Made by a program: the position numbers and the translations under genes. The notes under the pieces were generated by a model. That model was not told where the DNA came from. It saw nothing but the letters and a program-made list of their open reading frames with translations, and searched no databases. Shown piece after piece: positions 6,868 through 28,674 of a stretch of DNA of 28,799 nt. Every line of letters starts with the position of its first letter. The first letter of the stretch is position 1. Source of the DNA: Macrostomum lignano (Eukaryota); assembly GCA_002269645.1 (NCBI GenBank), contig NIVC01002557.1, positions 1-28,799 of the forward strand, given 5' to 3'.

Positions 6868-6890
6868 TGAAAAGTGAGTCAACGCTTAGC

Positions 6891-7300
6891 CCTGCATTAG
6901 CGGGGCATTAATTTTAATTATTCCGCTTCTGCACAGGTCAGCTTGACTCGCCAGTGTTTGCCTGTTTCTGCCGGCCCTTGCACCAGAAACACCAGATTCT
7001 CAGTCTCGCTCACTATGAAGCCAGCACACTGTACTGTCTCTCTCAATTGCTGTCCACTTTCTCTGTTTTGACGGGATTGGTAGACGGCCCATGCTTTAGT
7101 TTTTGGAGTTTCTCTCTCGCATCGCGCATTCTGCCTCCATATCTCTTACCTCTACCTCTCTCACCTTAGCAACCAGACCGCAATGCGTGGTTCTGCTCCG
7201 GACTCCGCCCCTCCTCATGCAGCGACCAATTCAGACCGCCCGCTCCCTCCGCACTCTCTCTCTCTGAGTTCTTTCCTCTGCCCCTCAACTACACAATCTC
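6891..7300 (-). promoter_or_regulatory. Putative TTLL7 promoter, non-coding first exon and 5-prime UTR intron
   Basis: GC boxes (ccgccc at about 7205 and 7236) and CCAAT (7226-7230). Minus-strand donor consensus GAG|GTAAGA at 7150/7149, with an alternative AAG|GTGAGA at 7165/7164. Acceptor ctaatgcag| at 6892/6891, 24 nt before the ATG. Inferred from motifs only. Confidence 0.4.
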
Positions 7301-8325
7301 TGAGTACAACAAATTGCCTCATTCAATAGACTGCTTCACCTCATTATCAGCCTAGCTGTCGCCCTCCCATTCTCGCTCAATGACAGAGGCCGCTACACAT
7401 TCAAAGAATAGTGGCGTGATGATCACGAAGCTGAACGGTCAGACTTTGCAAGACCATGATGCTTCTAGCTGTCTCGGTTCATTCTCAGGCTAGGAAGGAA
7501 TCTAGTTAGCAAAGCCAGAGCTCTGGTATTCACCTACATTGAAGCCAATAGAAAATGAGCATTTTCAACCCCTGCCAGAAAATTTGCAATCATGCCGGCC
7601 AGATCTATAGCACAGAACTGCGTGGGCTTTTGCGTAGGACCTAGACGGAAGCTTATGGACTGTGGCCCAAGATCTACATAAAAAATTCATGCACTGTAGG
7701 CCGATTTGCGTGGGCTAACGTCACTCACAAGAAAATTACAAACCTATGTATGCTACTCATCGCAACTATTTTGCTAGTAGTACAAGAAAAATGAAAAAGG
7801 TGCCGAAGATCTCTGTCCCCAATGACTCAATGAGGCACGAGAATTCGCCGTAAATCCCATCATACGAGCTATGTCTACCTTCCGCTTGACGCTCCGAAGC
7901 TCCGAAGCTCAAGTGCATATAGACTTTGATTTGGACAGAAAAATTACTGTGGCTTAAAGAATTTTTAAATAAACAGGTTGCTGAATTTAAACCAAAAAAC
8001 GCCGATACTGACACAAGTCCTTGTTGTTTCTACACTTTGTTTCGTATTTATCTTTCTTATTCCATCAGGTTTATTTAATCGCTGCAAAAGCAATCCCGCG
8101 GTTAAAAAATAATAATTGCTTACAAAAAGCTCTCGCTGTTTTGTTGCATTAGCTGAGAAAACTGCTTCGTGGTTCAGAGATGTGTTTTCAAATAAAAGCT
8201 AACTATGACTGATCTGAGAAATAAAGCAGTTCAAATAAAGCAGTTCAATGTGTTCGCAGTGGGCTGAGTCAGTCAGAGACTATCATTGCCAACAGTCGAA
8301 GCGAAGCAGTCGTTGCTTGATCAAC

Positions 8326-9449
8326 TCAGACGCCCAGAGCATTGGTCGGAGAGACCAGACGGCAAACCAGGGCCACCACAGCCACTGCAGCAAAGGCGAT
8401 TGACAGCGCGAATGGCCTGGCTGTCTGATCTGCCGTGGAGGACGCCGATTCTTTCTCTTTACTTGATGGGGTGAACGAGTCCAGAGACGGCGGGGGTGGC
8501 GCAGGCGACGGCGGCAATTCAATCTTTACCGGCGGCAGAGGCGGGCTGTTGGAGTTGTCTTTAAGGTTGCACAGATCGGTGTCACATGTTTTGCAGTTCT
8601 GCCAGTTCAGTTTGTCACAGTGCAGTTGGCACCCGACCAGGAAGTGCTAAAGTAGAGTGCGCGGAGTTCTGTAGTAGAATACTGGATGAATATCGTGAAA
8701 AAAGCTTGAAAAACTTGAAAGGAGAAAATAAACGAGGGGAAAGGAATCTCTGAATTATTGCTACTGCCAAGTACAATTTTCAAAAAAGTACTCTTCGATA
8801 AACCCCAACTCATTTCTATGATCCCTTTTCTATGAACCATCTCAGTCTCACCTCTGCATCGGTCGGGTTGGGGCTGGAGATGCATGGCATATCTTTCGGG
8901 CACAAGACAGGCACAGGAAGCGGGCCGATTGTAGTATTGAGGGAGTTGTAGCATAGCAGATACTTCGTAACGTTTGACTTGAGCTCGTTGCCATACTCGA
9001 CGTTGCAGTGGTCCTTAAAGCACTCGCGGCACTCAACGCTGTTTTTATCGAATTTTCCGCACTTGCCACAGCCGAAGTACATCTCCTACGAGTATAAGCA
9101 TAAATTATGGTGATTCAGCTGTAGTCTCTTGAATTTTAACTCTGAAATAAATTCATGCAGCGCGACTCACGAAAAATCCTGGATTTGTTTCCCAATTTAT
9201 CCTGCGCTTCTCAACGCAAGCGTTTCCAACTGCCTGGCATGTGTGGGCCTCTGCAGGAAAGTCAACACCGATAGTCGAGTGGTTGCCTGTGTAGCACGTG
9301 AGGGCTTCAGCAGTCTGAGTCGCGGCTGTGGGTTGGCAAATATATTTATATAAATTTCGCTTCAAATATTGCAATAGAAATCGAGTTCGTATCTGCATCA
9401 TTTACTCACCAAGCAGAACTCCAAGCAGCAGATACAGAAGCGTCAACAT
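8326..9449 (-). CDS. Secreted, membrane-anchored protein with two Ly6/uPAR (three-finger)-like 8-Cys domains, 249 aa, 4 exons (copy 1)
   Basis: Exons 9449-9410, 9325-9171, 9085-8852 and 8646-8326 (750 nt) are joined by GT-AG introns of 84, 85 and 205 nt with matching phases (1, 0, 0). Product: signal peptide MLTLLYLLLGVLLAATQTAEA; domain 1 LTCY...FGCGKC...CRECFKDHCN; domain 2 LLCY...VGCQLHC...CKTCDTDLCN; three N-glycosylation sequons (NHS, NVT, NTT); Pro/Ser stalk; hydrophobic tail FALSIAFAAVAVVALVC. Confidence 0.88.
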
Positions 9450-9974
9450 CTTCAAAGGCGAGTGAAAAACGAGACCCAGTGATCAAAGCCACACTAAAGC
9501 AGAGAATGAGATGATTGAGTTCTCTAAGCTTCAGTAATTGAAAGTTCTTATGCTTTGCTCTTTCCACTTACTGTTAGGAGGCGAGAGACTGAATTTTCGC
9601 GTGGGAAATCGGTAGGATTGGCCATAGACATGCTGCTCAGGCTTTTGTTTTTCTGTTTTGCGCGAGAGATGCCTCTACGATCGATAGAAAGGAAAATATT
9701 TTCTAGGGCACTGAGAATGCTATCATGGGCGAGACTATCTATTACTGAGAGAGACACGCATTTGCAGAGGCACCCACGGACCGTTGGCGCTACTGGCATA
9801 AGCCATGCATGGTGCCTTTGCAATACTTTTCTGTGTGTTGGAACCGGGCATCTGCATGGTCTAGAAGTGGCTGCAATAGACAGTGGGATGCAATTCAAAC
9901 CGGTCATTTTTTATTTCTTCACATTTTAAAAATGGCTCTACAAAATACAGATTATAAAAGTACAAGGCAACTAC

Positions 9975-10130
9975 TGGCGGATCCAGGGGTTCAAGAGGGT
10001 CGGCTGAGTCAAGAGAGGCAACGACATTCACAGGGCGCGTTTCAGAGCCTGGGCGCGGATGTAGGCGGCACTGCCTGCAGTGTCCGGGGCGCCGGCATCA
10101 GCCACGAAATGCCGAGTGCACCTGTCTTTT
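9975..10130. mobile_element. Possible MITE-like terminus or fragment (also at about 20869-21024)
   Basis: GGCGGATCCAGGGG terminus-like motif followed by a GC-rich tract and tandem arrays. No partner TIR was found. Confidence 0.25.
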
Positions 10131-10133
10131 TTA

Positions 10134-10489
10134 GCAATCCCCCGTAAGCCTCGACATCTCAGCGACTCCCTCGTGAGCACTGAAATCTCAGTAATTCCCC
10201 AGTAAGCCTTGACATCTCAGCAATTCCCCTAGTAAGCACCCCCAAATAGCAAGCACCCCAGACAGCAAGCATCCCCCTGATAGCAAGCATCCCCCTGATA
10301 GCAAGCATCCCCCTGATAGCAAGCATCCCCTTGATAGCAAGCATCCCCCAGATAGCAAGCATCCCCCTCGATAGCAAGCATCCCCCCTCTATAGCAAGCA
10401 TCCCCCAGATAAGCAGGCATCCACCAGATAGCAAGCATCCACCAGATAGCAAGCATCCCCCAGATAGCAAGCATCCCCCAGATAGCAAG
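10134..10489. repeat. Compound minisatellite: about 3.5 degenerate ~30-bp units, then about 13.5 x 18-bp units (gatagcaagcatccccca)
   Basis: Directly visible tandem units. The 18-bp array spans about 10246-10489. Confidence 0.95.
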
Positions 10490-10692
10490 TAGCTAGTGCA
10501 ACAATTTCCTCAGCTAGTGCTAATTCCTTTCTCAGCTAGCGCTTCAGAGACTGATTGAGCTGGCTTGTTGACGATGGAGAATCCATGGCGCAGGCCAACA
10601 CGGAGAAACTCCGCATTCAAATCGCAGGCTCCCAGGCTGATGACGAGAGTGACAAGGTCGAGGCCAGCGGCTGGATTGGCGACTGAGATGTC

Positions 10693-10782
10693 GGCTGAGA
10701 CTGAGACTGTCCGAGTGAGGCTGAGACTGAGACTGTCCGAGTGAGGCTGAGACTGAGACTGTCCGAGTGATACTGAGACTGT
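10693..10782. repeat. 26-bp tandem repeat x3 (ggctgagactgagactgtccgagtga)
   Basis: Units at 10693, 10719 and 10745, plus a degenerate partial unit. Confidence 0.95.
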
Positions 10783-12299
10783 TCTCTGCTATGAGAATGA
10801 GTGAAGCTGACGTGTTCAAAACAGCCAGAGTTTGCCATGATGCTGTCAGTGTTGCATCCTGCTTTCAGGCGCTATTGAACCAAGGAGTGCTGACACTGCC
10901 CTCAATTAGAAGGTTGATTTCGATCTCTAGTCCTCTTTCTGTGGACCCTGGTGTCTGACGAGCGGTACATTCACCTGCAAAGTAAGGAACTGCCGATCGC
11001 AGAGTGCAGCGTGAATCTAATACTCGATGAGATTCATCCTAACATAACATGCGTATTGAATCTTCCACTGGAAGAGTGGACTCATTCACCAAGAAAGAAT
11101 TTATTTTAATAGAAGTAAAATAACTGCAATAATGATGCAATTAGTTTAATTTCCAAGTCCATATACTAATTTGAACTCAAAATTAGTCGTTGCTCAGCTT
11201 TAAACAGAAAAAGCACTGCGGGAATGGAATTCAATGGGAATTCCTATACTCCTATAATCCTATACGCGTATTTTCAACTCGGCCCGGTTATGTTAAAGTC
11301 CAAAAAAGTCTTCAATTCCATACGAGTGTACATGTAAGCTAGTACATTTCTACGAGTATGCTTGAACAGTGCTTCGAAAGCCTTGAAGTACTGATAGTGA
11401 GCAGCCCTGGAAAGGGAAGGGAAGGAAGAGGAGCAGAGAGGAGTAGAAAAGTAAGGGGGGATTGTATCGAGCTGTTGAGACGAGCTTGCACTTTGTAAAC
11501 CGTTAACTGGGACCCAAGCAGAAGCTGGAACTGTGCCTTCACTGCCCGCGGATGGCTTCCCGACTCCTCCAATCCCAACCCCTCAGCCCCGACCCCCGCT
11601 TCAACTTGCGATACGCTTGTGGTCACAAGTTGCCAAAAAGTCACGCAACTCTCTCACTATCTTACTAAATAATCTTTCTGACCTGATTATTTGCAAAACA
11701 GGCCGCAGAATACTGTAATTCTTAACCCATGGGTATCTGGGTTTGGGTTGGCGGTTTTCAATGTTGCTGAGTTATCTGAGTATATATTCTATGAATATGA
11801 TTAAGTTAACAGAAAAGAATGAACCGTCTCGAGTGTGCGGAAAGAAGCAAATACTCGTAAATTTTGGTCAAATTTCTAATTTCAATGGATGTTAACAAAA
11901 TGTGGGAGTGCTACTAACTTTGCTCGAAAAATCTGCGCATTTGGAATACTCTGTCACGACTCACGAGTGAAGGCAGTGGTAATAGTAATATAGTATGGAG
12001 GTCAGGCTGGCAAAGGTGAGCCACATATTCAGATTTTAGCTTCGCCAGCAATTATGTAACACAGCGCTGGCCAAGCCCAAAACGATTGCGTAGATCGTAC
12101 CAATGCTATGTATAAGCTTTGTAGCGAGGCCTGTGACTAACAAAAGACAGACATGAATGGCAGGCTTGTGCAATGCATTGCATGATTACAATACAATATG
12201 TTAAACCCACTAACCAGAAAAGCCTGGGGATCAAGCAGATGAAGTTTGAATCCGAGTGTACAGGCTGACAGAGGAAAGCTCTTATGCGACCTTGGCGCC

Positions 12300-12845
12300 A
12301 GCCAATAGCAGCTGGGCGGCCGCACATTTCGTGATCAGTGTACGCACAACCCGCTGTACACTCTGGAATGAACACACTCGCTCATTCCTCTCTTGTTACC
12401 CACCCGCCCTTCATTTAAGACCGCACACGGCCTGCCCCATAGCCTTGCATTCAGTTCTTCCCTTCCTCAGTCTGCCGCGAGCCAGGGAAGTTTGCGGAAC
12501 CGGTTTGGCTCTTTGACCGAGAGGAAGGCGAGGAAAGTTACAAGCTTCTTGACCGCGAAGTGAGCTGAAGGCTCAAGGTAATCGATTCTGTTTTTCGAAT
12601 TTTCAGCTTCAATCTTTTTATTTGTAAGCTTTAAGATTTGTAATGCATTAATACTGGGCCTAAGAATCAGCAACCGTTTTTTGTTATTTCATCAGAATTA
12701 ATAGCAGTTTGAGTGACCAGTCCGACACGAACGGAACAAAAACTGACTGAGCTTTCGATCAGCTAAATGGGGTACTTGTGGAGTGAACTCCACTTGCGCA
12801 CTCCAAAGACTCAAATGCCAATGCTTTTATAAACTGTCACCTCAG
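12300..12845 (+). promoter_or_regulatory. Putative PPP1R3 promoter, non-coding exon 1 (about 12451-12577) and 268-nt 5-prime UTR intron (12578-12845)
   Basis: CCAAT, CAGCTG and GGGCGG cluster at 12303-12320, GC box at about 12403-12409, and initiator-like TCAGTT at 12451. The ATG-free segment ends in donor AAG|GTAATC, followed by an AT-rich intron and acceptor cacctcag|. The same is present at 23193-23738. Confidence 0.55.
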
Positions 12846-12859
12846 CTGAGCGAGCCCGG

Positions 12860-12913
12860 ATGCGCTGGACTCGCCTTCGGACTGCCACCCCGGCCCTGCC
12901 GGCACCCCGGTGA
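12860..12913 (+). CDS. Upstream ORF (17 aa, MRWTRLRTATPALPAPR) in the PPP1R3 leader
   Basis: First ATG after the predicted acceptor. Weak context (C at -3 and +4). Stop lies 14 nt before the main ATG. Translation is not demonstrated. The copy is at 23753-23806. Confidence 0.4.
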   Translation: MRWTRLRTATPALPAPR

Positions 12914-12927
12914 GAACCCAGGTTGGC

Positions 12928-13975
12928 ATGGACGAGGGCATTTCGGAGCCCGCGCTGCCGCAGGCCAGGGACAGCAGCGGCTGCCCGGCTGGAGACTGCG
13001 GCTCCAGCAGCGAGGGCTACGCCACATCGCAGGACAGCCTCGTGGCCTCCTCGGAGACGCTCAGCTTTGCCAGCGAGGACGCGCCGAGCGATGAGGCACA
13101 GAAGCTGGACAGTCTGAGTCTGGCGCTGCAGGAGCTGCGCTACGAGAAGCTTCCCCCACCGCAGCCGCTGGCCATTCAGACTCAACGCCAGAAGCCGGTC
13201 GGTGCTAGCAAGCAGCTGCAGCAGCAGCGTCGCTCCTCTTCCATGAAGTCCCAGAAGACGCCGCCGGGCACGCCGAACCAGATGAAGAAGGTCGTCCGCT
13301 TTGCCGATGCGTTCGGGCTCGACCTGGCTTACGTGAAGCACGTTTTCGATACCGAGAACCCGCCGGTGATCCCACCGCAGGCTACTCGGGACCTTGATTT
13401 GCCCGAAGCTACAGCTGCCGCGATCTCCCGTCTCCGGTGAGCCGCGAATTCTGTGTTCCCAATTATTTCATTTCTATAACTCGCTTTCTAATAAACTGCA
13501 TTGAAGCAGGCCGGAGCCTCTTGAGCGACGCCTGTTCAGTAGCCCATGCTTCGCTCAGCCCGGTGGCTGCGCCAGCTTCATGTCGCGCGTGCTGGCCCAG
13601 CGGGTGGTGCTGGAGCGGGCGAGCGCTACGCAGCCCAGCGGTCGCATTCACGGCCTCGTGCGCGTGGCCAACCTGGGCTTCGAGAAGTCCGTGATGGCTC
13701 ACGCTACCTTCGATGGCTGGCGCAGCTGCATCGACGTGCCCGCCGTCTATGTCGAGGGCTCCAGCACCGGCGCCACGGACCAGTTTTCATTCACACTGCC
13801 GCTGCCGCAGAGTTTCGGCGTGGGCGACCGGGTCTTCCTCTGCGTTCGCTACTGCATCGGCGGAGAGACCTTCTGGGACAACAACTTCGGCGAGAACTAC
13901 GCCTTCGACTGCTTCGCTGTCAACACCGTCAGCGGCGGCGGCACCACCGGGCCCGCCTGCTCGCGTTTTTTGTGA
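12928..13975 (+). CDS. PPP1R3: Protein phosphatase 1 glycogen-targeting regulatory subunit (PPP1R3/CBM21 family), 324 aa, 2 coding exons (copy 1)
   Basis: Exons 12928-13436 and 13510-13975, with a 73-nt GTGAGC...GCAG phase-2 intron that joins two ORF-track ORFs in frame (975 nt). PP1-binding RVxF motif KKVVRFADAFGLDL. CBM21 motifs GLVRVANLGFEKSV...TFDGW and FWDNNFGENY. The paralogue letter cannot be assigned. Confidence 0.95.
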
Positions 13976-15192
13976 GCTGCAGGCAGGGCTCAAGCTCAAG
14001 TGACCAACCCTCCCGAATCCCATCCCTAGTGCCCTAACAGATTCAGAATCTCCTCATGCGAAATATGTCGCTGTGATGTTAAATGCGATGATTTCGTTTC
14101 GAGTCGAATCTTACTTGAATTTCTCCCCCACCCTCCATATTATTTCCCTCTTCTGCTCCATAAAAATGTCTGGCCCTTGTAAAATTAATTTCCCGAGTTG
14201 TCCTTCAGCCCTGGTGAATGACTTTCAGTATCACGAGTTTTAGCTTTACAGGCTGAGGCGCTCGCAGCAGCCACAGAGCATCGCAGCTCTGAGCTACTCG
14301 ATGCATCCTCATTGTTCCGGTCAGCTTCCTATAGTTTCCCGCCCCAGTCTTGCCATTGGTGTGACCTCATTTAACCTCGTCTGTACGAAGCCATCAACGC
14401 GTATAACTCTTCATTAACACTCAGTGTGGCTCTTGCGAATAGTTCAATGTTTACCAATGATGCAGGACGAAACGGACTGCAACTTGTTTACCCCCCAAGT
14501 GTTGGCCAACTGCTCTTTAAATTGAATTTTTCGGCCTTAGGCTGAGTCCTATTAGATTTTCTGTCTACAAAATACAAATAGTTTTTTTTACTGTTGTTCT
14601 TTCATGATTTTTGCTCTTGCCTCAAGCAGCAGAGCGTCGCTCATCGCTCCTCATGTTGGGCTCGATATTGGCCCGCACCGCTTAGCTCCCGATTCGCTCA
14701 AATTATCTAGCCCCTCATCTTTTCTCATTCTGCCTAAAACAGTGTATTCTGAGCATAGCAACTAGGGTTAGGGTCTCTATTTTTAATAGTCGCTTGCTCG
14801 AGGCTGCCACGGCTTCAATGACATCGAGTTCGGAAGCTTTATTTAGTTCTGAAACTCGTTTCGAAATTGACTCCATAATTTTCCCTGTAGACAAATCAGT
14901 ATGGTTCAGCTCTCAAGAAGCAACTTGGTACGCATTTTAGGGAGCTCAGCTTATTCATTTTTGTACTAGAAATGTAGAAATTAGGCATTAGTAGGTGCGC
15001 ACCTAGGTTGGCTCATTGGACTGTGCCCAGCGCTCCCTTCATTGCGTGAAAATACACAGAATAGCCTAGCTGTGTTGCTTGCCGAGTATTTTGCTAAGCC
15101 TCCGCGAGCAAAAATCGAAAACGCTTCCAAGCGAACAAGTTGTTGCCTTGCTAAATTGCTTTGTTCTTCAACACTGTCCCTGACTTTATCAC

Positions 15193-15990
15193 TTTCACTG
15201 ACTTTCTGCCTCCTCCACCGACTCTTGCCTTCTTCACCGACTCTTGCCTTCTTCACCGACTCTTGCCTTCTTCACCGACTCTTTGCCTCCTTCACCGACT
15301 CTTGCCTTCTTCACCGACTCTTTGCCTCCTTCACCGACTCTTGCCTTCTTCACCGACTCTTTGCCTCCTTCACCGACTCTTGGCCTCCCTCACCGACTCT
15401 TGCCTTCTTCACCGACTCTTTGCCTCCTTCACCGACTTTTTACCTTCTTCACCGACTCTTGCCTTCTTCACCGACTCTTGCCTTCTTCACCGACTCTTGG
15501 CCACCTTCACCGACTCTTGGCCTCCTTCACCGACTCTTGCCTTCTTCACTGACTTTCTGCCTCCTCCACCGACTCTTGCCTTCTTCACCGACTCTTTGCC
15601 TCCTTCACCGACTTTTTACCTTCTTCACCGACTCTTGCCTTCTTCACCGACTCTTGCCTTCTTCACCGACTTTTTACCTTCTTCACCGACTCTTGCCTTC
15701 TTCACTGACTTTCTGCCTCCTCCACCGACTCTTGCCTTCTTCACCGACTCTTGCCTTCTTCACCGACTTTTTACCTTCTTCACCGACTCTTGCCTTCTTC
15801 ACCGACTCTTGCCTTCTTCACCGACTCTTGCCTTCTTCACCGACTCTTTGCCTCCTTCACCGACTCTTGCCTTCTTCACCGACTTTTTACCTTCTTCACC
15901 GACTCTTGCCTTCTTCAGCGACTCTTGCCTTCTTCACCGACTCTTGCCTTCTTCACCGACTCTTTGCCTCCTTCACCGACTCTTGGCCAC
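15193..15990. repeat. 19/20-bp pyrimidine-rich minisatellite, about 40 units (ccttcttcaccgactcttg and variants)
   Basis: Directly visible. It decays into diverged units to about 16080 and generates the spurious 277-347 aa ORFs. Confidence 0.98.
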
Positions 15991-16910
15991 TTAGCCAACT
16001 TCAACGACTCTTAGTCAACTTTACCACCAACTCTTGGCCTCTGTCACCAACTTTTAACCACCCCAATAGCCTCATCAACTCATGAGGAGGTTGACTTGTT
16101 CTCACTTTTCATATAACTCCTTGGCGCTGCAGTGATCTCTAGTCACTTCTTTGACAACTCACTGATAGGAGCGTATGTTAAATATTATATTTTAATCCTT
16201 AGGTTTATGTCACCTTAACACCCTTAGAATCTTCGAAAATTTCCCTCAGAAACGCTAATGACTGTTTTCCCATTCAGGATCCGCTGAAAGCAGAATCGTT
16301 AATTCGAATAATGTTAGATTCGTTCCAAAGAAAAAATCCATCAATTCTGGTCTTGAAGTCGCAGATAAAACCAAAGAGAGCTGCAAAACTGCAGCGGCTG
16401 CTTGCTGCTTGCGATCTCTTATAGACGGCTTAAAGAGCTCTTAAAATGCTAAATGTATGTACAGTCGAGCCGTCTCAGCTACTGCAAACTGATCACTCGC
16501 ATAAGAGGCACTTCGCTTACATTCCTAAGCCATGTGTAAACTTAGAAATGAGAAAAAGCTACAGAAATAAAAATGCTGCAATAAGAGATACAAACAAAGG
16601 GAAATAACTCAAAGCGGGCTCGTCAGCACCTCACTCAAGATGCACCAAAATACGCATGAAAGCTAGTGAACAAACTGAGGAGAATAGGCTTGCAGGCTCA
16701 ACTGCACAGTCATTCCTCAACAGCTAATAACACGCTAATAGCAGAATGGTAAACTAAAGAAAGTTTCCGTGCATATTTACATGCATATACATTTATACAC
16801 TTACTTTCCCTGTACTTAATCTATGAGCGGCGTGAAGCTTTGGCATTTGTGGTGTAAATTATTTCGCCTCGAAGATGCATTCCTCAGCCTGCAGGAAATG
16901 CACAACCGTA

Positions 16911-17774
16911 TCACGGGGTCCTGAGGCACCGCGTCAACAACTCCGCGAGACAGTTTCGAAGTCTATTGAGAACGCCATTCACACCTTCACCGGCCTTGAC
17001 GCTGAATTCCTCCCTCCCGAGTCCTTGAGCCTCCACGTTTGCCGTCTGGTTGCGGGAGGACGCAGCTACAGTTACTGCCTTCTGAATCTTGGAATCCGAG
17101 ACGCTTATCCCGCCTTCCTGATTCACAATCACAAAGCTGTTCTCATTGTCCGCTTCATCACTGACAGGAGTCTTCACTGTCTCGTAGACATCAGCCGCAG
17201 GTGGCAGTGCCACGGCCAAGACGGTTTGCCCCGACATCCGGTCTGAATCACTGCAGCTCATCTCGGCGGTAGTGCCACCCGCTGCGGGAGTTGCATAGCT
17301 GGTTGGCTTGCTCACACCACTGCAGCCGCTGCTGCAGATGGTGATGCAGATGGAATGCTGGCTGGTTCCTTCGCGACTGTTGGACGCCACCCGAGCTGAC
17401 TGGCTGGCTGCCAAAGAAGAAAGCTCGGCCTCTACCGATGCGGTCCTGTAGCCACTGCTGCCGTGACTGCGCCCTGCGGTTGAGGCCGTCCTAGAGGTGC
17501 TGCAGAGCGGCAGGTAGGTCCAGGATGACTGGTGCAGCCGTCTGGGCCTCTGCTGCGGCTGCCGCTTACGGAGCAGTAGGCGGGATTTCTGAATGTCGTA
17601 GCGGACGATGCCGACCGATTTCCAAGTTGATGTTGAAGCTGAGGTCTTTGCCTTGTGGCGCGTCGGTGACCGGCTTTTAATCGGCATGTCCGCCCTCTGC
17701 TTCACTGCTGCTGGCATTAGCGGAGATGCTGTGCGCACTGAGCTGCACCGCTGCTCTGATCGAACGAAGCTTCT
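16911..17774 (-). pseudogene. 5-prime-truncated copy of orphan Ser/Thr/Ala-rich ORF (gene X, copy 1)
   Basis: Open from the duplication junction to TGA at 16913-16911. It lacks the ATG and first codons present in copy 2 (MSS). It is a GC-rich block with sharp AT-rich flanks and could still be translated from the internal ATG (MPAAVKQ). No recognisable domain. Confidence 0.55.
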
Positions 17775-18956
17775 CTTACCTCTACCTCTCTCACCTTAGC
17801 AACCAGACCGCAATGCGTGGTTCTGCTCCGGACTCCGCCCCTCCTCATGCAGCGACCAATTCAGACCGCCCGCTCCCTCCGCACTCTCTCTCTCTGAGTT
17901 CTTTCCTCTGCCCCTCAACTACACAATCTCTGAGTACAACAAATTGCCTCATTCAATAGACTGCTTCACCTCATTATCAGCCTAGCTGTCGCCCTCCCAT
18001 TCTCGCTCAATGACAGAGGCCGCTACACATTCAAAGAATAGTGGCGTGATGATCACGAAGCTGAACGGTCAGACTTTGCAAGACCATGATGCTTCTAGCT
18101 GTCTCGGTTCATTCTCAGGCTAGGAAGGAATCTAGTTAGCAAAGCCAGAGCTCTGGTATTCACCTACATTGAAGCCAATAGAAAATGAGCATTTTCAACC
18201 CCTGCCAGAAAATTTGCAATCATGCCGGCCAGATCTATAGCACAGAACTGCGTGGGCTTTTGCGTAGGACCTAGACGGAAGCTTATGGACTGTGGCCCAA
18301 GATCTACATAAAAAATTCATGCACTGTAGGCCGATTTGCGTGGGCTAACGTCACTCACAAGAAAATTACAAACCTATGTATGCTACTCATCGCAACTATT
18401 TTGCTAGTAGTACAAGAAAAATGAAAAAGGTGCCGAAGATCTCTGTCCCCAATGACTCAATGAGGCACGAGAATTCGCCGTAAATCCCATCATACGAGCT
18501 ATGTCTACCTTCCGCTTGACGCTCCGAAGCTCCGAAGCTCAAGTGCATATAGACTTTGATTTGGACAGAAAAATTACTGTGGCTTAAAGAATTTTTAAAT
18601 AAACAGGTTGCTGAATTTAAACCAAAAAAACGCCGATACTGACACAAGTCCTTGTTGTTTCTACACTTTGTTTCGTATTTATCTTTCTTATTCCATCAGG
18701 TTTATTTAATCGCTGCAAAAGCAATCCCGCGGTTAAAAAATAATAATTGCTTACAAAAAGCTCTCGCTGTTTTGTTGCATTAGCTGAGAAAACTGCTTCG
18801 TGGTTCAGAGATGTGTTTTCAAATAAAAGCTAACTATGACTGATCTGAGAAATAAAGCAGTTCAAATAAAGCAGTTCAATGTGTTCGCAGTGGGCTGAGT
18901 CAGTCAGAGACTATCATTGCCAACAGTCGAAGCGAAGCAGTCGTTGCTTGATCAAC

Positions 18957-20080
18957 TCAGACGCCCAGAGCATTGGTCGGAGAGACCAGACGGCAAACCA
19001 GGGCCACCACAGCCACTGCAGCAAAGGCGATTGACAGCGCGAATGGCCTGGCTGTCTGATCTGCCGTGGAGGACGCCGATTCTTTCTCTTTACTTGATGG
19101 GGTGAACGAGTCCAGAGACGGCGGGGGTGGCGCAGGCGACGGCGGCAATTCAATCTTTACCGGCGGCAGAGGCGGGCTGTTGGAGTTGTCTTTAAGGTTG
19201 CACAGATCGGTGTCACATGTTTTGCAGTTCTGCCAGTTCAGTTTGTCACAGTGCAGTTGGCACCCGACCAGGAAGTGCTAAAGTAGAGTGCGCGGAGTTC
19301 TGTAGTAGAATACTGGATGAATATCGTGAAAAAAGCTTGAAAAACTTGAAAGGAGAAAATAAACGAGGGGAAAGGAATCTCTGAATTATTGCTACTGCCA
19401 AGTACAATTTTCAAAAAAGTACTCTTCGATAAACCCCAACTCATTTCTATGATCCCTTTTCTATGAACCATCTCAGTCTCACCTCTGCATCGGTCGGGTT
19501 GGGGCTGGAGATGCATGGCATATCTTTCGGGCACAAGACAGGCACAGGAAGCGGGCCGATTGTAGTATTGAGGGAGTTGTAGCATAGCAGATACTTCGTA
19601 ACGTTTGACTTGAGCTCGTTGCCATACTCGACGTTGCAGTGGTCCTTAAAGCACTCGCGGCACTCAACGCTGTTTTTATCGAATTTTCCGCACTTGCCAC
19701 AGCCGAAGTACATCTCCTACGAGTATAAGCATAAATTATGGTGATTCAGCTGTAGTCTCTTGAATTTTAACTCTGAAATAAATTCATGCAGCGCGACTCA
19801 CGAAAAATCCTGGATTTGTTTCCCAATTTATCCTGCGCTTCTCAACGCAAGCGTTTCCAACTGCCTGGCATGTGTGGGCCTCTGCAGGAAAGTCAACACC
19901 GATAGTCGAGTGGTTGCCTGTGTAGCACGTGAGGGCTTCAGCAGTCTGAGTCGCGGCTGTGGGTTGGCAAATATATTTATATAAATTTCGCTTCAAATAT
20001 TGCAATAGAAATCGAGTTCGTATCTGCATCATTTACTCACCAAGCAGAACTCCAAGCAGCAGATACAGAAGCGTCAACAT
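18957..20080 (-). CDS. Two-domain Ly6/three-finger-like membrane-anchored protein (copy 2)
   Basis: Exons 20080-20041, 19956-19802, 19716-19483 and 19277-18957. No difference from copy 1 was seen. Confidence 0.88.
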
Positions 20081-20350
20081 CTTCAAAGGCGAGTGAAAAA
20101 CGAGACCCAGTGATCAAAGCCACACTAAAGCAGAGAATGAGATGATTGAGTTCTCTAAGCTTCAGTAATTGAAAGTTCTTATGCTTTGCTCTTTCCACTT
20201 ACTGTTAGGAGGCGAGAGACTGAATTTTCGCGTGGGAAATCGGTAGGATTGGCCATAGACATGCTGCTCAGGCTTTTGTTTTTCTGTTTTGCGCGAGAGA
20301 TGCCTCTACGATCGATAGAAAGGAAAATATTTTCTAGGGCACTGAGAATG

Positions 20351-20613
20351 ATATATTCCTGCACGGTCACGAGTGCGGGAATGACATCTGCACGAGTGCG
20401 CGCTAGCGCACGAGTGCACGATGTCCTTCACGCACGAGTGAACGTGAAGGAATTCCATTGTCGGATGATTCATCGTGCAGGAATGCACAAAACCGTGCAG
20501 GAATGCATTTCTGCGCCTAATGCTTTTTCAGTGAGATTTTACCATAGACATCCATTCCTGCACGCAAAAGAGTGCAAGAATCCCATTCTTGCATGGAAAA
20601 TCAGCCGACAATG
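20351..20613. other. 263-bp repeat-rich, self-complementary segment present only in copy 2
   Basis: Copy 1 reads gagAATGctatc (9714-9725). Copy 2 reads gagAATG-[259 bp]-AATGctatc. The offset between copies jumps from 10631 to 10894. Confidence 0.95.
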
Positions 20614-21027
20614 CTATCATGGGCGAGACTATCTATTACTGAGAGAGACACGCATTTGCAGAGGCACCCACGGACCGTTGGCGCTACTGGCATAAGCCAT
20701 GCATGGTGCCTTTGCAATACTTTTCTGTGTGTTGGAACCGGGCATCTGCATGGTCTAGAAGTGGCTGCAATAGACAGTGGGATGCAATTCAAACCGGTCA
20801 TTTTTTATTTCTTCACATTTTAAAAATGGCTCTACAAAATACAGATTATAAAAGTACAAGGCAACTACTGGCGGATCCAGGGGTTCAAGAGGGTCGGCTG
20901 AGTCAAGAGAGGCAACGACATTCACAGGGCGCGTTTCAGAGCCTGGGCGCGGATGTAGGCGGCACTGCCTGCAGTGTCCGGGGCGCCGGCATCAGCCACG
21001 AAATGCCGAGTGCACCTGTCTTTTTTA

Positions 21028-21383
21028 GCAATCCCCCGTAAGCCTCGACATCTCAGCGACTCCCTCGTGAGCACTGAAATCTCAGTAATTCCCCAGTAAG
21101 CCTTGACATCTCAGCAATTCCCCTAGTAAGCACCCCCCAAATAGCAAGCACCCCAGACAGCAAGCATCCCCCTGATAGCAAGCATCCCCCTGATAGCAAG
21201 CATCCCCCTGATAGCAAGCATCCCCTTGATAGCAAGCATCCCCCAGATAGCAAGCATCCCCCTCGATAGCAAGCATCCCCCTCTATAGCAAGCATCCCCC
21301 AGATAAGCAGGCATCCACCAGATAGCAAGCATCCACCAGATAGCAAGCATCCCCCAGATAGCAAGCATCCCCCAGATAGCAAG
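21028..21383. repeat. Compound ~30-bp/18-bp minisatellite (copy 2)
   Basis: Matches 10134-10489 except for two compensating C-run indels. Confidence 0.95.
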
Positions 21384-21586
21384 TAGCTAGTGCAACAATT
21401 TCCTCAGCTAGTGCTAATTCCTTTCTCAGCTAGCGCTTCAGAGACTGATTGAGCTGGCTTGTTGACGATGGAGAATCCATGGCGCAGGCCAACACGGAGA
21501 AACTCCGCATTCAAATCGCAGGCTCCCAGGCTGATGACGAGAGTGACAAGGTCGAGGCCAGCGGCTGGATTGGCGACTGAGATGTC

Positions 21587-21676
21587 GGCTGAGACTGAGA
21601 CTGTCCGAGTGAGGCTGAGACTGAGACTGTCCGAGTGAGGCTGAGACTGAGACTGTCCGAGTGATACTGAGACTGT
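21587..21676. repeat. 26-bp tandem repeat x3 (copy 2)
   Basis: Matches 10693-10782. Confidence 0.95.
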
Positions 21677-23820
21677 TCTCTGCTATGAGAATGAGTGAAG
21701 CTGACGTGTTCAAAACAGCCAGAGTTTGCCATGATGCTGTCAGTGTTGCATCCTGCTTTCAGGCGCTATTGAACCAAGGAGTGCTGACACTGCCCTCAAT
21801 TAGAAGGTTGATTTCGATCTCTAGTCCTCTTTCTGTGGACCCTGGTGTCTGACGAGCGGTACATTCACCTGCAAAGTAAGGAACTGCCGATCGCAGAGTG
21901 CAGCGTGAATCTAATACTCGATGAGATTCATCCTAACATAACATGCGTATTGAATCTTCCACTGGAAGAGTGGACTCATTCACCAAGAAAGAATTTATTT
22001 TAATAGAAGTAAAATAACTGCAATAATGATGCAATTAGTTTAATTTCCAAGTCCATATACTAATTTGAACTCAAAATTAGTCGTTGCTCAGCTTTAAACA
22101 GAAAAAGCACTGCGGGAATGGAATTCAATGGGAATTCCTATACTCCTATAATCCTATACGCGTATTTTCAACTCGGCCCGGTTATGTTAAAGTCCAAAAA
22201 AGTCTTCAATTCCATACGAGTGTACATGTAAGCTAGTACATTTCTACGAGTATGCTTGAACAGTGCTTCGAAAGCCTTGAAGTACTGATAGTGAGCAGCC
22301 CTGGAAAGGGAAGGGAAGGAAGAGGAGCAGAGAGGAGTAGAAAAGTAAGGGGGATTGTATCGAGCTGTTGAGACGAGCTTGCACTTTGTAAACCGTTAAC
22401 TGGGACCCAAGCAGAAGCTGGAACTGTGCCTTCACTGCCCGCGGATGGCTTCCCGACTCCTCCAATCCCAACCCCTCAGCCCCGACCCCCGCTTCAACTT
22501 GCGATACGCTTGTGGTCACAAGTTGCCAAAAAGTCACGCAACTCTCTCACTATCTTACTAAATAATCTTTCTGACCTGATTATTTGCAAAACAGGCCGCA
22601 GAATACTGTAATTCTTAACCCATGGGTATCTGGGTTTGGGTTGGCGGTTTTCAATGTTGCTGAGTTATCTGAGTATATATTCTATGAATATGATTAAGTT
22701 AACAGAAAAGAATGAACCGTCTCGAGTGTGCGGAAAGAAGCAAATACTCGTAAATTTTGGTCAAATTTCTAATTTCAATGGATGTTAACAAAATGTGGGA
22801 GTGCTACTAACTTTGCTCGAAAAATCTGCGCATTTGGAATACTCTGTCACGACTCACGAGTGAAGGCAGTGGTAATAGTAATATAGTATGGAGGTCAGGC
22901 TGGCAAAGGTGAGCCACATATTCAGATTTTAGCTTCGCCAGCAATTATGTAACACAGCGCTGGCCAAGCCCAAAACGATTGCGTAGATCGTACCAATGCT
23001 ATGTATAAGCTTTGTAGCGAGGCCTGTGACTAACAAAAGACAGACATGAATGGCAGGCTTGTGCAATGCATTGCATGATTACAATACAATATGTTAAACC
23101 CACTAACCAGAAAAGCCTGGGGATCAAGCAGATGAAGTTTGAATCCGAGTGTACAGGCTGACAGAGGAAAGCTCTTATGCGACCTTGGCGCCAGCCAATA
23201 GCAGCTGGGCGGCCGCACATTTCGTGATCAGTGTACGCACAACCCGCTGTACACTCTGGAATGAACACACTCGCTCATTCCTCTCTTGTTACCCACCCGC
23301 CCTTCATTTAAGACCGCACACGGCCTGCCCCATAGCCTTGCATTCAGTTCTTCCCTTCCTCAGTCTGCCGCGAGCCAGGGAAGTTTGCGGAACCGGTTTG
23401 GCTCTTTGACCGAGAGGAAGGCGAGGAAAGTTACAAGCTTCTTGACCGCGAAGTGAGCTGAAGGCTCAAGGTAATCGATTCTGTTTTTCGAATTTTCAGC
23501 TTCAATCTTTTTATTTGTAAGCTTTAAGATTTGTAATGCATTAATACTGGGCCTAAGAATCAGCAACCGTTTTTTGTTATTTCATCAGAATTAATAGCAG
23601 TTTGAGTGACCAGTCCGACACGAACGGAACAAAAACTGACTGAGCTTTCGATCAGCTAAATGGGGTACTTGTGGAGTGAACTCCACTTGCGCACTCCAAA
23701 GACTCAAATGCCAATGCTTTTATAAACTGTCACCTCAGCTGAGCGAGCCCGGATGCGCTGGACTCGCCTTCGGACTGCCACCCCGGCCCTGCCGGCACCC
23801 CGGTGAGAACCCAGGTTGGC

Positions 23821-24868
23821 ATGGACGAGGGCATTTCGGAGCCCGCGCTGCCGCAGGCCAGGGACAGCAGCGGCTGCCCGGCTGGAGACTGCGGCTCCAG
23901 CAGCGAGGGCTACGCCACATCGCAGGACAGCCTCGTGGCCTCCTCGGAGACGCTCAGCTTTGCCAGCGAGGACGCGCCGAGCGATGAGGCACAGAAGCTG
24001 GACAGTCTGAGTCTGGCGCTGCAGGAGCTGCGCTACGAGAAGCTTCCCCCACCGCAGCCGCTGGCCATTCAGACTCAACGCCAGAAGCCGGTCGGTGCTA
24101 GCAAGCAGCTGCAGCAGCAGCGTCGCTCCTCTTCCATGAAGTCCCAGAAGACGCCGCCGGGCACGCCGAACCAGATGAAGAAGGTCGTCCGCTTTGCCGA
24201 TGCGTTCGGGCTCGACCTGGCTTACGTGAAGCACGTTTTCGATACCGAGAACCCGCCGGTGATCCCACCGCAGGCTACTCGGGACCTTGATTTGCCCGAA
24301 GCTACAGCTGCCGCGATCTCCCGTCTCCGGTGAGCCGCGAATTCTGTGTTCCCAATTATTTCATTTCTATAACTCGCTTTCTAATAAACTGCATTGAAGC
24401 AGGCCGGAGCCTCTTGAGCGACGCCTGTTCAGTAGCCCATGCTTCGCTCAGCCCGGTGGCTGCGCCAGCTTCATGTCGCGCGTGCTGGCCCAGCGGGTGG
24501 TGCTGGAGCGGGCGAGCGCTACGCAGCCCAGCGGTCGCATTCACGGCCTCGTGCGCGTGGCCAACCTGGGCTTCGAGAAGTCCGTGATGGCTCACGCTAC
24601 CTTCGATGGCTGGCGCAGCTGCATCGACGTGCCCGCCGTCTATGTCGAGGGCTCCAGCACCGGCGCCACGGACCAGTTTTCATTCACACTGCCGCTGCCG
24701 CAGAGTTTCGGCGTGGGCGACCGGGTCTTCCTCTGCGTTCGCTACTGCATCGGCGGAGAGACCTTCTGGGACAACAACTTCGGCGAGAACTACGCCTTCG
24801 ACTGCTTCGCTGTCAACACCGTCAGCGGCGGCGGCACCACCGGGCCCGCCTGCTCGCGTTTTTTGTGA
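23821..24868 (+). CDS. PPP1R3: PP1 glycogen-targeting subunit, PPP1R3/CBM21 family (copy 2)
   Basis: Exons 23821-24329 and 24403-24868. The translation is identical to copy 1. Confidence 0.95.
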
Positions 24869-26085
24869 GCTGCAGGCAGGGCTCAAGCTCAAGTGACCAA
24901 CCCTCCCGAATCCCATCCCTAGTGCCCTAACAGATTCAGAATCTCCTCATGCGAAATATGTCGCTGTGATGTTAAATGCGATGATTTCGTTTCGAGTCGA
25001 ATCTTACTTGAATTTCTCCCCCACCCTCCATATTATTTCCCTCTTCTGCTCCATAAAAATGTCTGGCCCTTGTAAAATTAATTTCCCGAGTTGTCCTTCA
25101 GCCCTGGTGAATGACTTTCAGTATCACGAGTTTTAGCTTTACAGGCTGAGGCGCTCGCAGCAGCCACAGAGCATCGCAGCTCTGAGCTACTCGATGCATC
25201 CTCATTGTTCCGGTCAGCTTCCTATAGTTTCCCGCCCCAGTCTTGCCATTGGTGTGACCTCATTTAACCTCGTCTGTACGAAGCCATCAACGCGTATAAC
25301 TCTTCATTAACACTCAGTGTGGCTCTTGCGAATAGTTCAATGTTTACCAATGATGCAGGACGAAACGGACTGCAACTTGTTTACCCCCCAAGTGTTGGCC
25401 AACTGCTCTTTAAATTGAATTTTTCGGCCTTAGGCTGAGTCCTATTAGATTTTCTGTCTACAAAATACAAATAGTTTTTTTTACTGTTGTTCTTTCATGA
25501 TTTTTGCTCTTGCCTCAAGCAGCAGAGCGTCGCTCATCGCTCCTCATGTTGGGCTCGATATTGGCCCGCACCGCTTAGCTCCCGATTCGCTCAAATTATC
25601 TAGCCCCTCATCTTTTCTCATTCTGCCTAAAACAGTGTATTCTGAGCATAGCAACTAGGGTTAGGGTCTCTATTTTTAATAGTCGCTTGCTCGAGGCTGC
25701 CACGGCTTCAATGACATCGAGTTCGGAAGCTTTATTTAGTTCTGAAACTCGTTTCGAAATTGACTCCATAATTTTCCCTGTAGACAAATCAGTATGGTTC
25801 AGCTCTCAAGAAGCAACTTGGTACGCATTTTAGGGAGCTCAGCTTATTCATTTTTGTACTAGAAATGTAGAAATTAGGCATTAGTAGGTGCGCACCTAGG
25901 TTGGCTCATTGGACTGTGCCCAGCGCTCCCTTCATTGCGTGAAAATACACAGAATAGCCTAGCTGTGTTGCTTGCCGAGTATTTTGCTAAGCCTCCGCGA
26001 GCAAAAATCGAAAACGCTTCCAAGCGAACAAGTTGTTGCCTTGCTAAATTGCTTTGTTCTTCAACACTGTCCCTGACTTTATCAC

Positions 26086-26883
26086 TTTCACTGACTTTCT
26101 GCCTCCTCCACCGACTCTTGCCTTCTTCACCGACTCTTGCCTTCTTCACCGACTCTTGCCTTCTTCACCGACTCTTTGCCTCCTTCACCGACTCTTGCCT
26201 TCTTCACCGACTCTTTGCCTCCTTCACCGACTCTTGCCTTCTTCACCGACTCTTTGCCTCCTTCACCGACTCTTGGCCTCCCTCACCGACTCTTGCCTTC
26301 TTCACCGACTCTTTGCCTCCTTCACCGACTTTTTACCTTCTTCACCGACTCTTGCCTTCTTCACCGACTCTTGCCTTCTTCACCGACTCTTGGCCACCTT
26401 CACCGACTCTTGGCCTCCTTCACCGACTCTTGCCTTCTTCACTGACTTTCTGCCTCCTCCACCGACTCTTGCCTTCTTCACCGACTCTTTGCCTCCTTCA
26501 CCGACTTTTTACCTTCTTCACCGACTCTTGCCTTCTTCACCGACTCTTGCCTTCTTCACCGACTTTTTACCTTCTTCACCGACTCTTGCCTTCTTCACTG
26601 ACTTTCTGCCTCCTCCACCGACTCTTGCCTTCTTCACCGACTCTTGCCTTCTTCACCGACTTTTTACCTTCTTCACCGACTCTTGCCTTCTTCACCGACT
26701 CTTGCCTTCTTCACCGACTCTTGCCTTCTTCACCGACTCTTTGCCTCCTTCACCGACTCTTGCCTTCTTCACCGACTTTTTACCTTCTTCACCGACTCTT
26801 GCCTTCTTCAGCGACTCTTGCCTTCTTCACCGACTCTTGCCTTCTTCACCGACTCTTTGCCTCCTTCACCGACTCTTGGCCAC
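26086..26883. repeat. 19/20-bp minisatellite (copy 2)
   Basis: Same length as 15193-15990, and the ORF-track translations across it are identical. Confidence 0.98.
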
Positions 26884-27803
26884 TTAGCCAACTTCAACGA
26901 CTCTTAGTCAACTTTACCACCAACTCTTGGCCTCTGTCACCAACTTTTAACCACCCCAATAGCCTCATCAACTCATGAGGAGGTTGACTTGTTCTCACTT
27001 TTCATATAACTCCTTGGCGCTGCAGTGATCTCTAGTCACTTCTTTGACAACTCACTGATAGGAGCGTATGTTAAATATTATATTTTAATCCTTAGGTTTA
27101 TGTCACCTTAACACCCTTAGAATCTTCGAAAATTTCCCTCAGAAACGCTAATGACTGTTTTCCCATTCAGGATCCGCTGAAAGCAGAATCGTTAATTCGA
27201 ATAATGTTAGATTCGTTCCAAAGAAAAAATCCATCAATTTTGGTCTTGAAGTCGCAGATAAAACCAAAGAGAGCTGCAAAACTGCAGCGGCTGCTTGCTG
27301 CTTGCGATCTCTTATAGACGGCTTAAAGAGCTCTTAAAATGCTAAATGTATGTACAGTCGAGCCGTCTCAGCTACTGCAAACTGATCACTCGCATAAGAG
27401 GCACTTCGCTTACATTCCTAAGCCATGTGTAAACTTAGAAATGAGAAAAAGCTACAGAAATAAAAATGCTGCAATAAGAGATACAAACAAAGGGAAATAA
27501 CTCAAAGCGGGCTCGTCAGCACCTCACTCAAGATGCACCAAAATACGCATGAAAGCTAGTGAACAAACTGAGGAGAATAGGCTTGCAGGCTCAACTGCAC
27601 AGTCATTCCTCAACAGCTAATAACACGCTAATAGCAGAATGGTAAACTAAAGAAAGTTTCCGTGCATATTTACATGCATATACATTTATACACTTACTTT
27701 CCCTGTACTTAATCTATGAGCGGCGTGAAGCTTTGGCATTTGTGGTGTAAATTATTTCGCCTCGAAGATGCATTCCTCAGCCTGCAGGAAATGCACAACC
27801 GTA

Positions 27804-28674
27804 TCACGGGGTCCTGAGGCACCGCGTCAACAACTCCGCGAGACAGTTTCGAAGTCTATTGAGAACGCCATTCACACCTTCACCGGCCTTGACGCTGAAT
27901 TCCTCCCTCCCGAGTCCTTGAGCCTCCACGTTTGCCGTCTGGTTGCGGAGGACGCAGCTACAGTTACTGCCTTCTGAATCTTGGAATCCGAGACGCTTAT
28001 CCCGCCTTCCTGATTCACAATCACAAAGCTGTTCTCATTGTCCGCTTCATCACTGACAGGAGTCTTCACTGTCTCGTAGACATCAGCCGCAGGTGGCAGT
28101 GCCACGGCCAAGACGGTTTGCCCCGACATCCGGTCTGAATCACTGCAGCTCATCTCGGCGGTAGTGCCACCCGCTGCGGGAGTTGCATAGCTGGTTGGCT
28201 TGCTCACACCACTGCAGCCGCTGCTGCAGATGGTGATGCAGATGGAATGCTGGCTGGTTCCTTCGCGACTGTTGGACGCCACCCGAGCTGACTGGCTGGC
28301 TGCCAAAGAAGAAAGCTCGGCCTCTACCGATGCGGTCCTGTAGCCACTGCTGCCGTGACTGCGCCCTGCGGTTGAGGCGTCCTAGAGGTGCTGCAGAGCG
28401 GCAGGTAGGTCCAGGATGACTGGTGCAGCCGTCTGGGCCTCTGCTGCGGCTGCCGCTTACGGAGCAGTAGGCGGGATTTCTGAATGTCGTAGCGGACGAT
28501 GCCGACCGATTTCCAAGTTGATGTTGAAGCTGAGGTCTTTGCCTTGTGGCGCGTCGGTGACCGGCTTTTAATCGGCATGTCCGCCCTCTGCTTCACTGCT
28601 GCTGGCATTAGCGGAGATGCTGTGCGCACTGAGCTGCACCGCTGCTCTGATCGAACGAAGCTTCTTGAACTCAT
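27804..28674 (-). CDS. Orphan low-complexity protein (gene X), 290 aa if two apparent -1 frameshifts are corrected (copy 2, native 5-prime end)
   Basis: ATG at 28674 (MSSRSFVRSEQRCSSVRTAS), preceded by an in-frame TAG and an acceptor-like tttccctcag| at 28706/28705. Relative to the open copy 1, single bases are missing at about 27947 (GGG to GG) and 28378 (CC to C). Coding status rests on ORF length and composition only. Confidence 0.55.

Follow-up and report, generated by a model that had tools for sequence, protein, structure and literature searches.

A putative very young 10.6-kb tandem duplication on a haplotig-like contig of Macrostomum lignano

The window analysed here is the whole of contig NIVC01002557.1 (28,799 bp) of the Macrostomum lignano assembly GCA_002269645.1 (Mlig_3_7). 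It contains a 10.6-kb unit twice, and the assembled sequence probably records a real, very young, non-homologous tandem duplication carried by one haplotype. This would be a non-recurrent tandem duplication of an ordinary kind, adding one example to a known class of copy number variant (CNV), located on a haplotig of a redundant draft. Two other contigs of the assembly were used for comparison: NIVC01002556.1 (133 kb), an allele-like contig hereafter called contig C, and NIVC01000543.1 (545 kb), hereafter called the paralog contig.

Structure of the duplicated unit and its junction

The unit, its boundaries and its right flank are as follows (aa, amino acids).
7142-17771 (10,630 bp), plus strand: copy 1 of the unit; the site of the 263-bp insertion is empty here.
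17772-28665 (10,894 bp, i.e. 10,631 bp and the 263-bp insertion), plus strand: copy 2 of the unit.
17766-17780: sole new junction, GAAGCT-TCT-CTTACC; the TCT at 17772-17774 can be assigned to either side.
7142-7167, plus strand: left breakpoint, 275 bp upstream of the ATG of a TTLL7-type gene; a pyrimidine-rich tract starts there.
28663-28674, minus strand: right breakpoint, between codons 3 and 4 of a gene encoding a 290-aa protein.
28666-28799: single-copy right flank, 134 bp up to the contig end; ancestral continuation of the unit in both relatives (contig C and the paralog contig).

A head-to-tail tandem duplication of 10.6 kb had been proposed in a first-pass annotation of this DNA. It is confirmed by a repeat search, by BLAST and by a global alignment of copy 1 against copy 2, which all give direct, adjacent copies with nothing in between. 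The identity between the copies exceeds 99.9%; chance cannot explain 10.6 kb of sequence at this identity. The junction, first described as gaagct-TCT-cttacc, is also as proposed: TCT is found at 7142-7144, 17772-17774 and 28663-28665, hence at both ends of the unit, with different bases next to it. The junction 31-mer is GATCGAACGAAGCTTCTCTTACCTCTACCTC. The window contains no N bases, including at the junction.

The unit is present once in contig C, which is 99.8-99.9% identical to the window, and once in the paralog contig, in which the gene order is unchanged and the identity is about 94-96%. Both are collinear with the window across the outer boundaries. For contig C, window 1-9682 and window 20607-28799 each align as one block; for the paralog contig, the corresponding blocks are 3849-7646 (left) and 26575-28799 (right). 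At the end of copy 1, the alignment to the paralog contig ceases exactly at 17774. Because both single-copy relatives span the outer boundaries, the adjacencies between flank and unit and between unit and flank are ancestral, and only the 17771/17772 join is new.

If the duplication is real, one chromosome copy would have the organization flank, unit, unit, flank, the unit being carried once by contig C and by the paralog contig. The unit would have been joined end to start at the TCT, its end lying in codons 3/4 of the 290-aa gene and its start 275 bp upstream of the TTLL7-type gene. The join could result from breaks at different positions in sister chromatids or homologues, followed by end joining, or, alternatively, from a replication template switch of the fork stalling and template switching/microhomology-mediated break-induced replication (FoSTeS/MMBIR) type.

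A microhomology of at least 3 bp is expected by chance with P = 0.051 (analytic) or P = 0.055 (random breakpoint pairs in this sequence); the 3 bp found here are only weakly above chance. The sequences around the breakpoints (±600 bp) share only chance 9-11-mers (E ≥ 0.28), and neither a mobile element nor a target-site duplication nor extra bases are found at the junction. Both repeat-mediated unequal crossover and a duplication mediated by a transposon are thus rejected. Minisatellites and mobile elements abound in the region and could have favoured tandem copies made by non-allelic homologous recombination (NAHR, i.e. unequal crossover between repeats) or by a transposon; however, the minisatellites are internal to the unit, the breakpoints lack homology and the junction lacks any trace of an element, so that this origin is hardly credible.

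The first-pass annotation had excluded repeat-mediated crossover and attributed the junction to microhomology-mediated end joining (MMEJ) or template switching. The first part stands, as there is no breakpoint homology; the second is too narrow, as 3 bp cannot tell MMEJ or template switching from non-homologous end joining (NHEJ). The join is non-homologous with a 3-bp microhomology, and NHEJ, MMEJ and replication template switching fit it equally; the pathway involved is presumably one of these. Simple junctions are "essentially indistinguishable" between repair models (PMC4056370).

Three other candidates were considered and rejected. An array of ribosomal DNA (rDNA) or other RNA genes would not fit two units with unique flanks, and the window contains no rRNA (Rfam thresholds) and no tRNA. 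A transposon at the junction does not fit, the junction being clean. The inverted artefact caused by a missed PacBio adapter does not fit either, as no inverted repeats were found in the window by the repeat search.

The event resembles non-recurrent tandem duplications with simple microhomology junctions (PMC2583991, PMC4056370) in its head-to-tail organization with a single new junction, in its 3-bp microhomology without inserted bases or long homology, in its kilobase size and in the potential non-B pyrimidine tract at one breakpoint. Among natural CNV junctions, the largest class (41% in Drosophila) has simple breakpoints that share 2 bp or more of microhomology, and sequences prone to non-B structures are enriched at CNV breakpoints in flies and humans (PMC4056370). 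In the tract that begins exactly at the left breakpoint, 23 of the 26 bases are C or T; it may form non-B DNA, although a single case proves nothing. The event differs from this class in that it is known from one assembled contig and its repair pathway is not assignable, and in that the 263-bp insertion, located 2.6 kb from the junction, looks more like a mobile element than like a templated insertion from the same event.

The size of the unit also recalls another class. BRCA1-deficient tumours display the class 1 "tandem duplicator phenotype", and stalled forks give microhomology-mediated tandem duplications of about 10 kb. The span of about 10 kb and the short-microhomology junction are common to these and to the unit; unlike it, they are somatic events of mammalian cells with a specific repair defect, so that this is a resemblance only and not a test.

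Relationship between the copies and status of the contig

Seven of the nine differences counted between the copies are 1-bp run-length indels, for which six positions are itemised. Relative to copy 1, copy 2 has +A at 18624, +C at 21133, -C at 21277, -G at 22349, -G at 27947 and -C at 28378. The others are a C/T substitution (16347/27240) and a 263-bp segment (20347-20609). The global alignment retrieved every difference listed in the first-pass annotation and no others. The two that are not run-length indels are described below.
20347-20609, copy 2 only: 263-bp segment made of a 259-bp putative foldback element, resembling a miniature inverted-repeat transposable element (MITE), and a 4-bp AATG direct repeat.
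27240: sole substitution between the copies; T in copy 2; C in copy 1, in contig C and in the paralog contig.

According to these comparisons, the T at 27240 is derived in copy 2. The 263-bp segment is missing from copy 1, from contig C and from the paralog contig; it is therefore a derived insertion in copy 2. What had been reported as an indel is thus polarised as an insertion in copy 2, not as a deletion in copy 1. Under the reading as a duplication, copy 2 would afterwards have received the foldback element, whose insertion duplicated 4 bp of target, and perhaps also one C>T change; the other differences would be residual PacBio consensus errors.

The three-way alignment of copy 1, copy 2 and contig C (two large insertions removed) has 15 variable columns. 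Four substitutions separate both copies from contig C; at three of these (7527, 14490 and 14905), the paralog contig has the base of contig C. Because they share three derived bases, copies 1 and 2 are sister sequences, and neither is the contig C haplotype pasted in. As for the 1-bp indels, two are private to copy 1, four to copy 2 and four to contig C. Of the 13 small indels relative to contig C, 7 (89, 210, 216, 27947, 28378, 28700 and 28786) are located less than 900 bp from a contig end (binomial P = 4.6e-6), which indicates low-coverage consensus errors at the contig ends. The 1-bp run indels, although present as first listed, are thus, judging from their sequence context, almost certainly PacBio consensus errors and not divergence; Pilon was presumably unable to correct them within near-identical repeats. 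The likely real differences between the copies are the C>T change and the 263-bp insertion in copy 2. No private difference is found within 17055-18623, around the junction; this error-free region is suggestive, though not proof, of several reads over the junction.

Several minisatellites are included in the unit.
15194-15985, plus strand: CT-rich 19-bp minisatellite, about 41 units (TTCACCGACTCTTGCCTTC); twin at 26087-26878.
10133-10489 and 10693-10781: 29-bp (x3.6), 18-bp (x14) and 26-bp (x3.4) minisatellites; twins at 21027-21383 and 21587-21675.

The 41-unit array has the same length and sequence in both copies. The 14-unit 18-bp array (TAGCAAGCATCCCCCAGA) is also the same, except for two 1-bp run-length differences inside the array. 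These equal lengths indicate a very recent common ancestry of the copies; the claim that the duplication is very recent thus holds, the copies being extremely similar including in their minisatellites. The 19-bp array has an extreme strand asymmetry (GC skew of about -0.52 to -0.57, AT skew of about -0.43) and yields long spurious open reading frames (ORFs) of 277-347 aa; the alignment to the paralog contig (about 95% identity) breaks inside it.

Mlig_3_7 was assembled by Canu 1.4 from PacBio reads, polished by Pilon and scaffolded by SSPACE; its DNA came from pooled worms of the inbred but aneuploid DV1 line, and its redundant share is about 180-312 Mb of 764 Mb (PMC5730564). This draft is known for expanded and collapsed haplovariants and for many chimeric scaffolds. 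Macrostomum lignano is a neopolyploid with three subgenomes, S, L1 and L2, whose divergence in single-nucleotide polymorphisms (SNPs) is roughly 1.4-2.4% (published values: L1-L2, 1.4-1.9%; L-S, 1.6-2.4%).

The whole window (1-28799) aligns to contig C except for the duplication, the 263-bp insert and a 5.4-kb insertion in contig C. Because it lies wholly inside the span of this larger contig and differs from it mainly by structural variants, the window behaves as a haplotig, and we infer that it is an alternative-haplotype contig. The accession numbers of the two contigs (NIVC01002557.1 and NIVC01002556.1) are adjacent, an observation that was not relied upon. The locus is thus held redundantly, as described for haplotigs and false heterotype duplications (Ko et al. 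2022, PMC9516828; Rhie et al. 2021, PMC8081667): the window is 99.9% identical to a part of contig C, inside the span of which it lies, and structural variants differ between them. Unlike the false duplications described (PMC9516828), the copies are not separated by a diagnostic gap, and their junction is precise and without homology.

Subgenome paralogy (PMC10733133) could be involved in the case of the paralog contig, whose identity of about 95% fits subgenome-level divergence; its BLAST blocks have about 2.5-3.7% mismatches, compared with the 1.9-2.4% SNPs published for subgenomes (PMC10733133). By contrast, the copies in the window are adjacent and differ by about 0.01%, so that they do not come from whole-genome duplication, and the window differs from contig C by about 0.04% substitutions, far below the reported L1-L2 or L-S divergence. 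Two of the three expected subgenome copies of the locus can be distinguished in the assembly; the third may be collapsed or missing.

The most serious competing explanation is an assembly artefact, in which two single-copy haplotypes, one with the empty site and one with the 263-bp insert, would have been concatenated by chimeric reads or by a layout or consensus error. Long-read and older assemblies often contain false duplications (PMC9516828), and the expanded haplovariants and chimeric scaffolds of this draft make one plausible here. The window is a small contig inside the span of a larger near-identical one and ends, with a poor consensus, 134 bp past copy 2; the unit is known in three structural versions; and, like alleles, the copies are distinguished by a structural polymorphism. 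Against this, the gap between copies that is the hallmark checkable from sequence (PMC9516828) is not present. As the two ends of the unit have no common sequence from which a spurious overlap could arise, the join must come from reads. A ligation chimera mimicking a 10.6-kb direct tandem would have a probability of roughly 1e-5 per chimeric read in a genome of about 0.7 Gb (our own estimate); Canu trims junctions that are not spanned by other reads; and the 1.5 kb around the junction have no private errors, unlike the low-coverage contig ends. Finally, an artefact requires three haplotypes, whereas two (one duplicated; one single-copy with the insertion found in contig C) suffice for a duplication. 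The private insertion and substitution of copy 2 fit alleles as well as post-duplication divergence; the three derived SNPs are common to both copies. On balance, an artefact is unlikely, although it is by far the strongest of the alternatives.

The first-pass annotation had argued that a novel junction is hard to obtain by simple haplotype stacking, and this argument holds. As there is neither a gap nor homology, an overlap assembler such as Canu 1.4 could build the join only from reads containing it, and we infer that the junction is present in reads. Moreover, because copy 2 has its own derived insertion, the copies are physically distinct and not one stretch read twice.

A real junction could also have its source in an extrachromosomal circle of 10.6 kb or in a variant, rare or somatic, present among the pooled worms, its reads being threaded with chromosomal reads during assembly. 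A single unit closed into a circle at the TCT would have an identical junction, and the DNA came from many pooled animals. However, the copies differ by the 263-bp insertion and one substitution and each is joined to its own flank; the contig needs reads of at least 8 kb linking the empty site, the junction and the insertion; and native PacBio libraries sequence linear fragments, so that circles would give few reads. A circle or a rare variant is thus improbable, and remains so even when taken together with NAHR.

Some points weigh against a real duplication, which nevertheless remains the favoured reading. The duplication is known from one assembled contig. Exact-product look-ups of two junction-spanning ORFs in public read assemblies (Logan) gave no match; a control ORF from the unit was likewise unmatched, so that this result is uninformative. 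The assembly is a draft made from pooled worms of an aneuploid neopolyploid line, and the contig is short, with a poor consensus in the 134 bp that follow copy 2. One inbred line has the unit in three forms (with the empty site, with the 263-bp insert and with the 5.4-kb insertion), which also fits three single-copy haplotypes, two of them wrongly concatenated. Lastly, a microhomology of 3 bp is found in about 5% of random joins.

Genes, inserted elements and left flank

The genes of the unit are listed below.
About 8326-9449, minus strand: gene encoding a 249-aa protein with a signal-peptide-like N-terminus (MLTLLYLLLGVLLG...), copy 1; the coordinates are approximate and derive from the annotation of contig C.
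18957-20080, minus strand: 249-aa gene, copy 2; identical to copy 1.
12928-13975, plus strand: CBM21 (PP1 glycogen-targeting-subunit-like) gene, copy 1; 324 aa, intron at 13437-13509 (73 bp).
23821-24868, plus strand: CBM21 gene, copy 2; base-for-base identical to copy 1.
16911-17774, minus strand: 290-aa gene (Mlig023082 family), copy 1; intact ORF lacking its ATG, two codons and its native upstream region.
27804-28674, minus strand: 290-aa gene, copy 2; native start and upstream region kept; two 1-bp deletions (27947 and 28378) break the frame.

The product of the CBM21 gene matches Pfam CBM_21 (1e-28) and has a visible RVxF-like motif, KVVRF. The exact protein is found under three NCBI accessions on two contigs, corresponding to the two genes of the window and one in contig C. 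The older ML2 annotation, consulted for copy number, lists one paralog-type entry and two of the window/contig C type, and these do not decide the copy number.

The 290-aa gene is cut by the right breakpoint. Its ATG is at 28674-28672, its product begins with MSSRSFVRSEQ, and the breakpoint lies between M-S-S and R-S-F; Arg4 is encoded by AGA, which on the opposite strand reads as the TCT of the microhomology. In copy 1, an in-frame stop is found 8 codons upstream of the ORF, past the junction. At the two frameshift sites of copy 2, copy 1, contig C and the paralog contig are all intact; these frameshifts, which belong to the cluster of indels within 900 bp of the contig end, are probably consensus errors. 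Between contig C and the paralog contig, this gene has 11 synonymous and 8 non-synonymous codons (dN/dS of roughly 0.25, from a crude site count). The Mlig023082-family gene is taken from this codon comparison to be a real, constrained gene. The suffixes of the gene names (Mlig023082 g1...g5) hint at more copies elsewhere. The outcome of the duplication would be that the CBM21 and 249-aa genes are doubled whole and that the 290-aa gene gains a 5′-truncated, promoterless extra copy; the coding region of the TTLL7-type gene is untouched by the left breakpoint.

Contig C carries one large insertion within the unit.
Contig C (NIVC01002556.1), at window-equivalent position about 9671/9672: non-LTR (long terminal repeat) retrotransposon of the long interspersed nuclear element (LINE) type, 5,375 bp.

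It encodes an Exo_endo_phos_2 endonuclease, RVT_1 and RNase_H, is flanked by a 12-bp target-site duplication (GCCTCTACGATC) and ends in a short repeat of the (TACT/TTAC) type. Its absence from both window copies and from the paralog contig makes it a recent insertion. Consensus errors may be the reason why its ORFs are distributed over several frames.

The 263-bp segment of copy 2 has a strong, hairpin-rich DNA fold (-71.8 kcal/mol, z = -10), and its termini are not clean inverted repeats. No significant Pfam family match was found for its ORFs, and no second copy of the element was found in the about 73 kb of paralog and contig C sequence searched. From its sequence, it looks like a small foldback (MITE-like) element; alternatively, it could be a templated insertion. 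It is not a remnant, such as a solo LTR, of the 5.4-kb insertion: the two sequences are unrelated and have different target duplications, and the larger element, located 44 bp away, is of the LINE type and has no terminal repeats.

The insertion sites of the 263-bp segment and of the LINE are 44 bp apart (window 9672-9716/20303-20347). Relative to the 249-aa gene, both insertions precede the ATG by about 220-270 bp (about 266 bp for the 263-bp segment and the copy 2 gene). The region upstream of this gene could be a hot spot for insertions, for example because its promoter chromatin is open.

The left flank contains the following features.
1-7141: single-copy left flank, with a TTLL7-type gene and the 5′ end of a SMAUG-like gene.
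4441-6867 (coding sequence), minus strand: TTLL7-type tubulin polyglutamylase gene (Pfam TTL, 6e-73).
1 to about 530, minus strand: 5′ end of the SMAUG-like gene; PHAT_SMAUG/SAM_1 matches in the annotation of contig C and of the paralog contig.

The left flank is 99.9% identical to contig C, with 2 substitutions and 5 small indels, and the 808-aa TTLL7-type protein has an exact match on two contigs of GCA_002269645.1, one of them NIVC01002557.1, the reverse complement of which equals window 1-16867. The closest database proteins to this TTLL7-type product are from Macrostomum lignano. The SMAUG-like gene appears to begin near 530 and leaves the contig at its left end. A 34-bp minisatellite (x6.7, 165-389) lies within or adjoining this gene; several overlapping offsets match in the paralog contig. 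Window 1000-3000 has a G+C content of 29%, versus 42-63% elsewhere in the window, and aligns to the paralog contig only partly, at 88-90% identity.

Structural heterozygosity and significance

Within a highly inbred line, haplotypes that differ by about 0.04% substitutions would here be separated by three independent structural events within 10.6 kb (the tandem duplication, the foldback insertion and the LINE insertion), so that structural mutation would be nearly as frequent as point mutation (3 events versus about 5 substitutions). It is tentatively proposed that, at this locus, heterozygosity between the two variants of the large chromosome is generated or kept up by rearrangements and mobile elements. 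In a bolder version, the 263-bp insertion would come from the same complex replication-based event as the duplication. A published idea is that rearrangements and mobile elements sustain heterozygosity in the neopolyploid M. lignano; the three structural events fit this idea, although one locus cannot establish it.

For users of Mlig_3_7, the three CBM21 "copies" (Mlig006495 g1, g2 and a third) are not independent loci, nor are the frameshifted or truncated Mlig023082 copies. This redundancy combines a haplotig, a possible polymorphic duplication and consensus errors, and it matters for knockouts, for the design of RNA interference (RNAi), for copy-number work and for expression analyses.

If the duplication is an artefact, the locus would be a further documented case of redundancy in Mlig_3_7; neither outcome alters a general principle. 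If it is real, it would be a newborn gene duplication whose ancestral state, breakpoints, first mutations and gene fates can be read directly, in a model flatworm whose genome is being reshaped after polyploidy.

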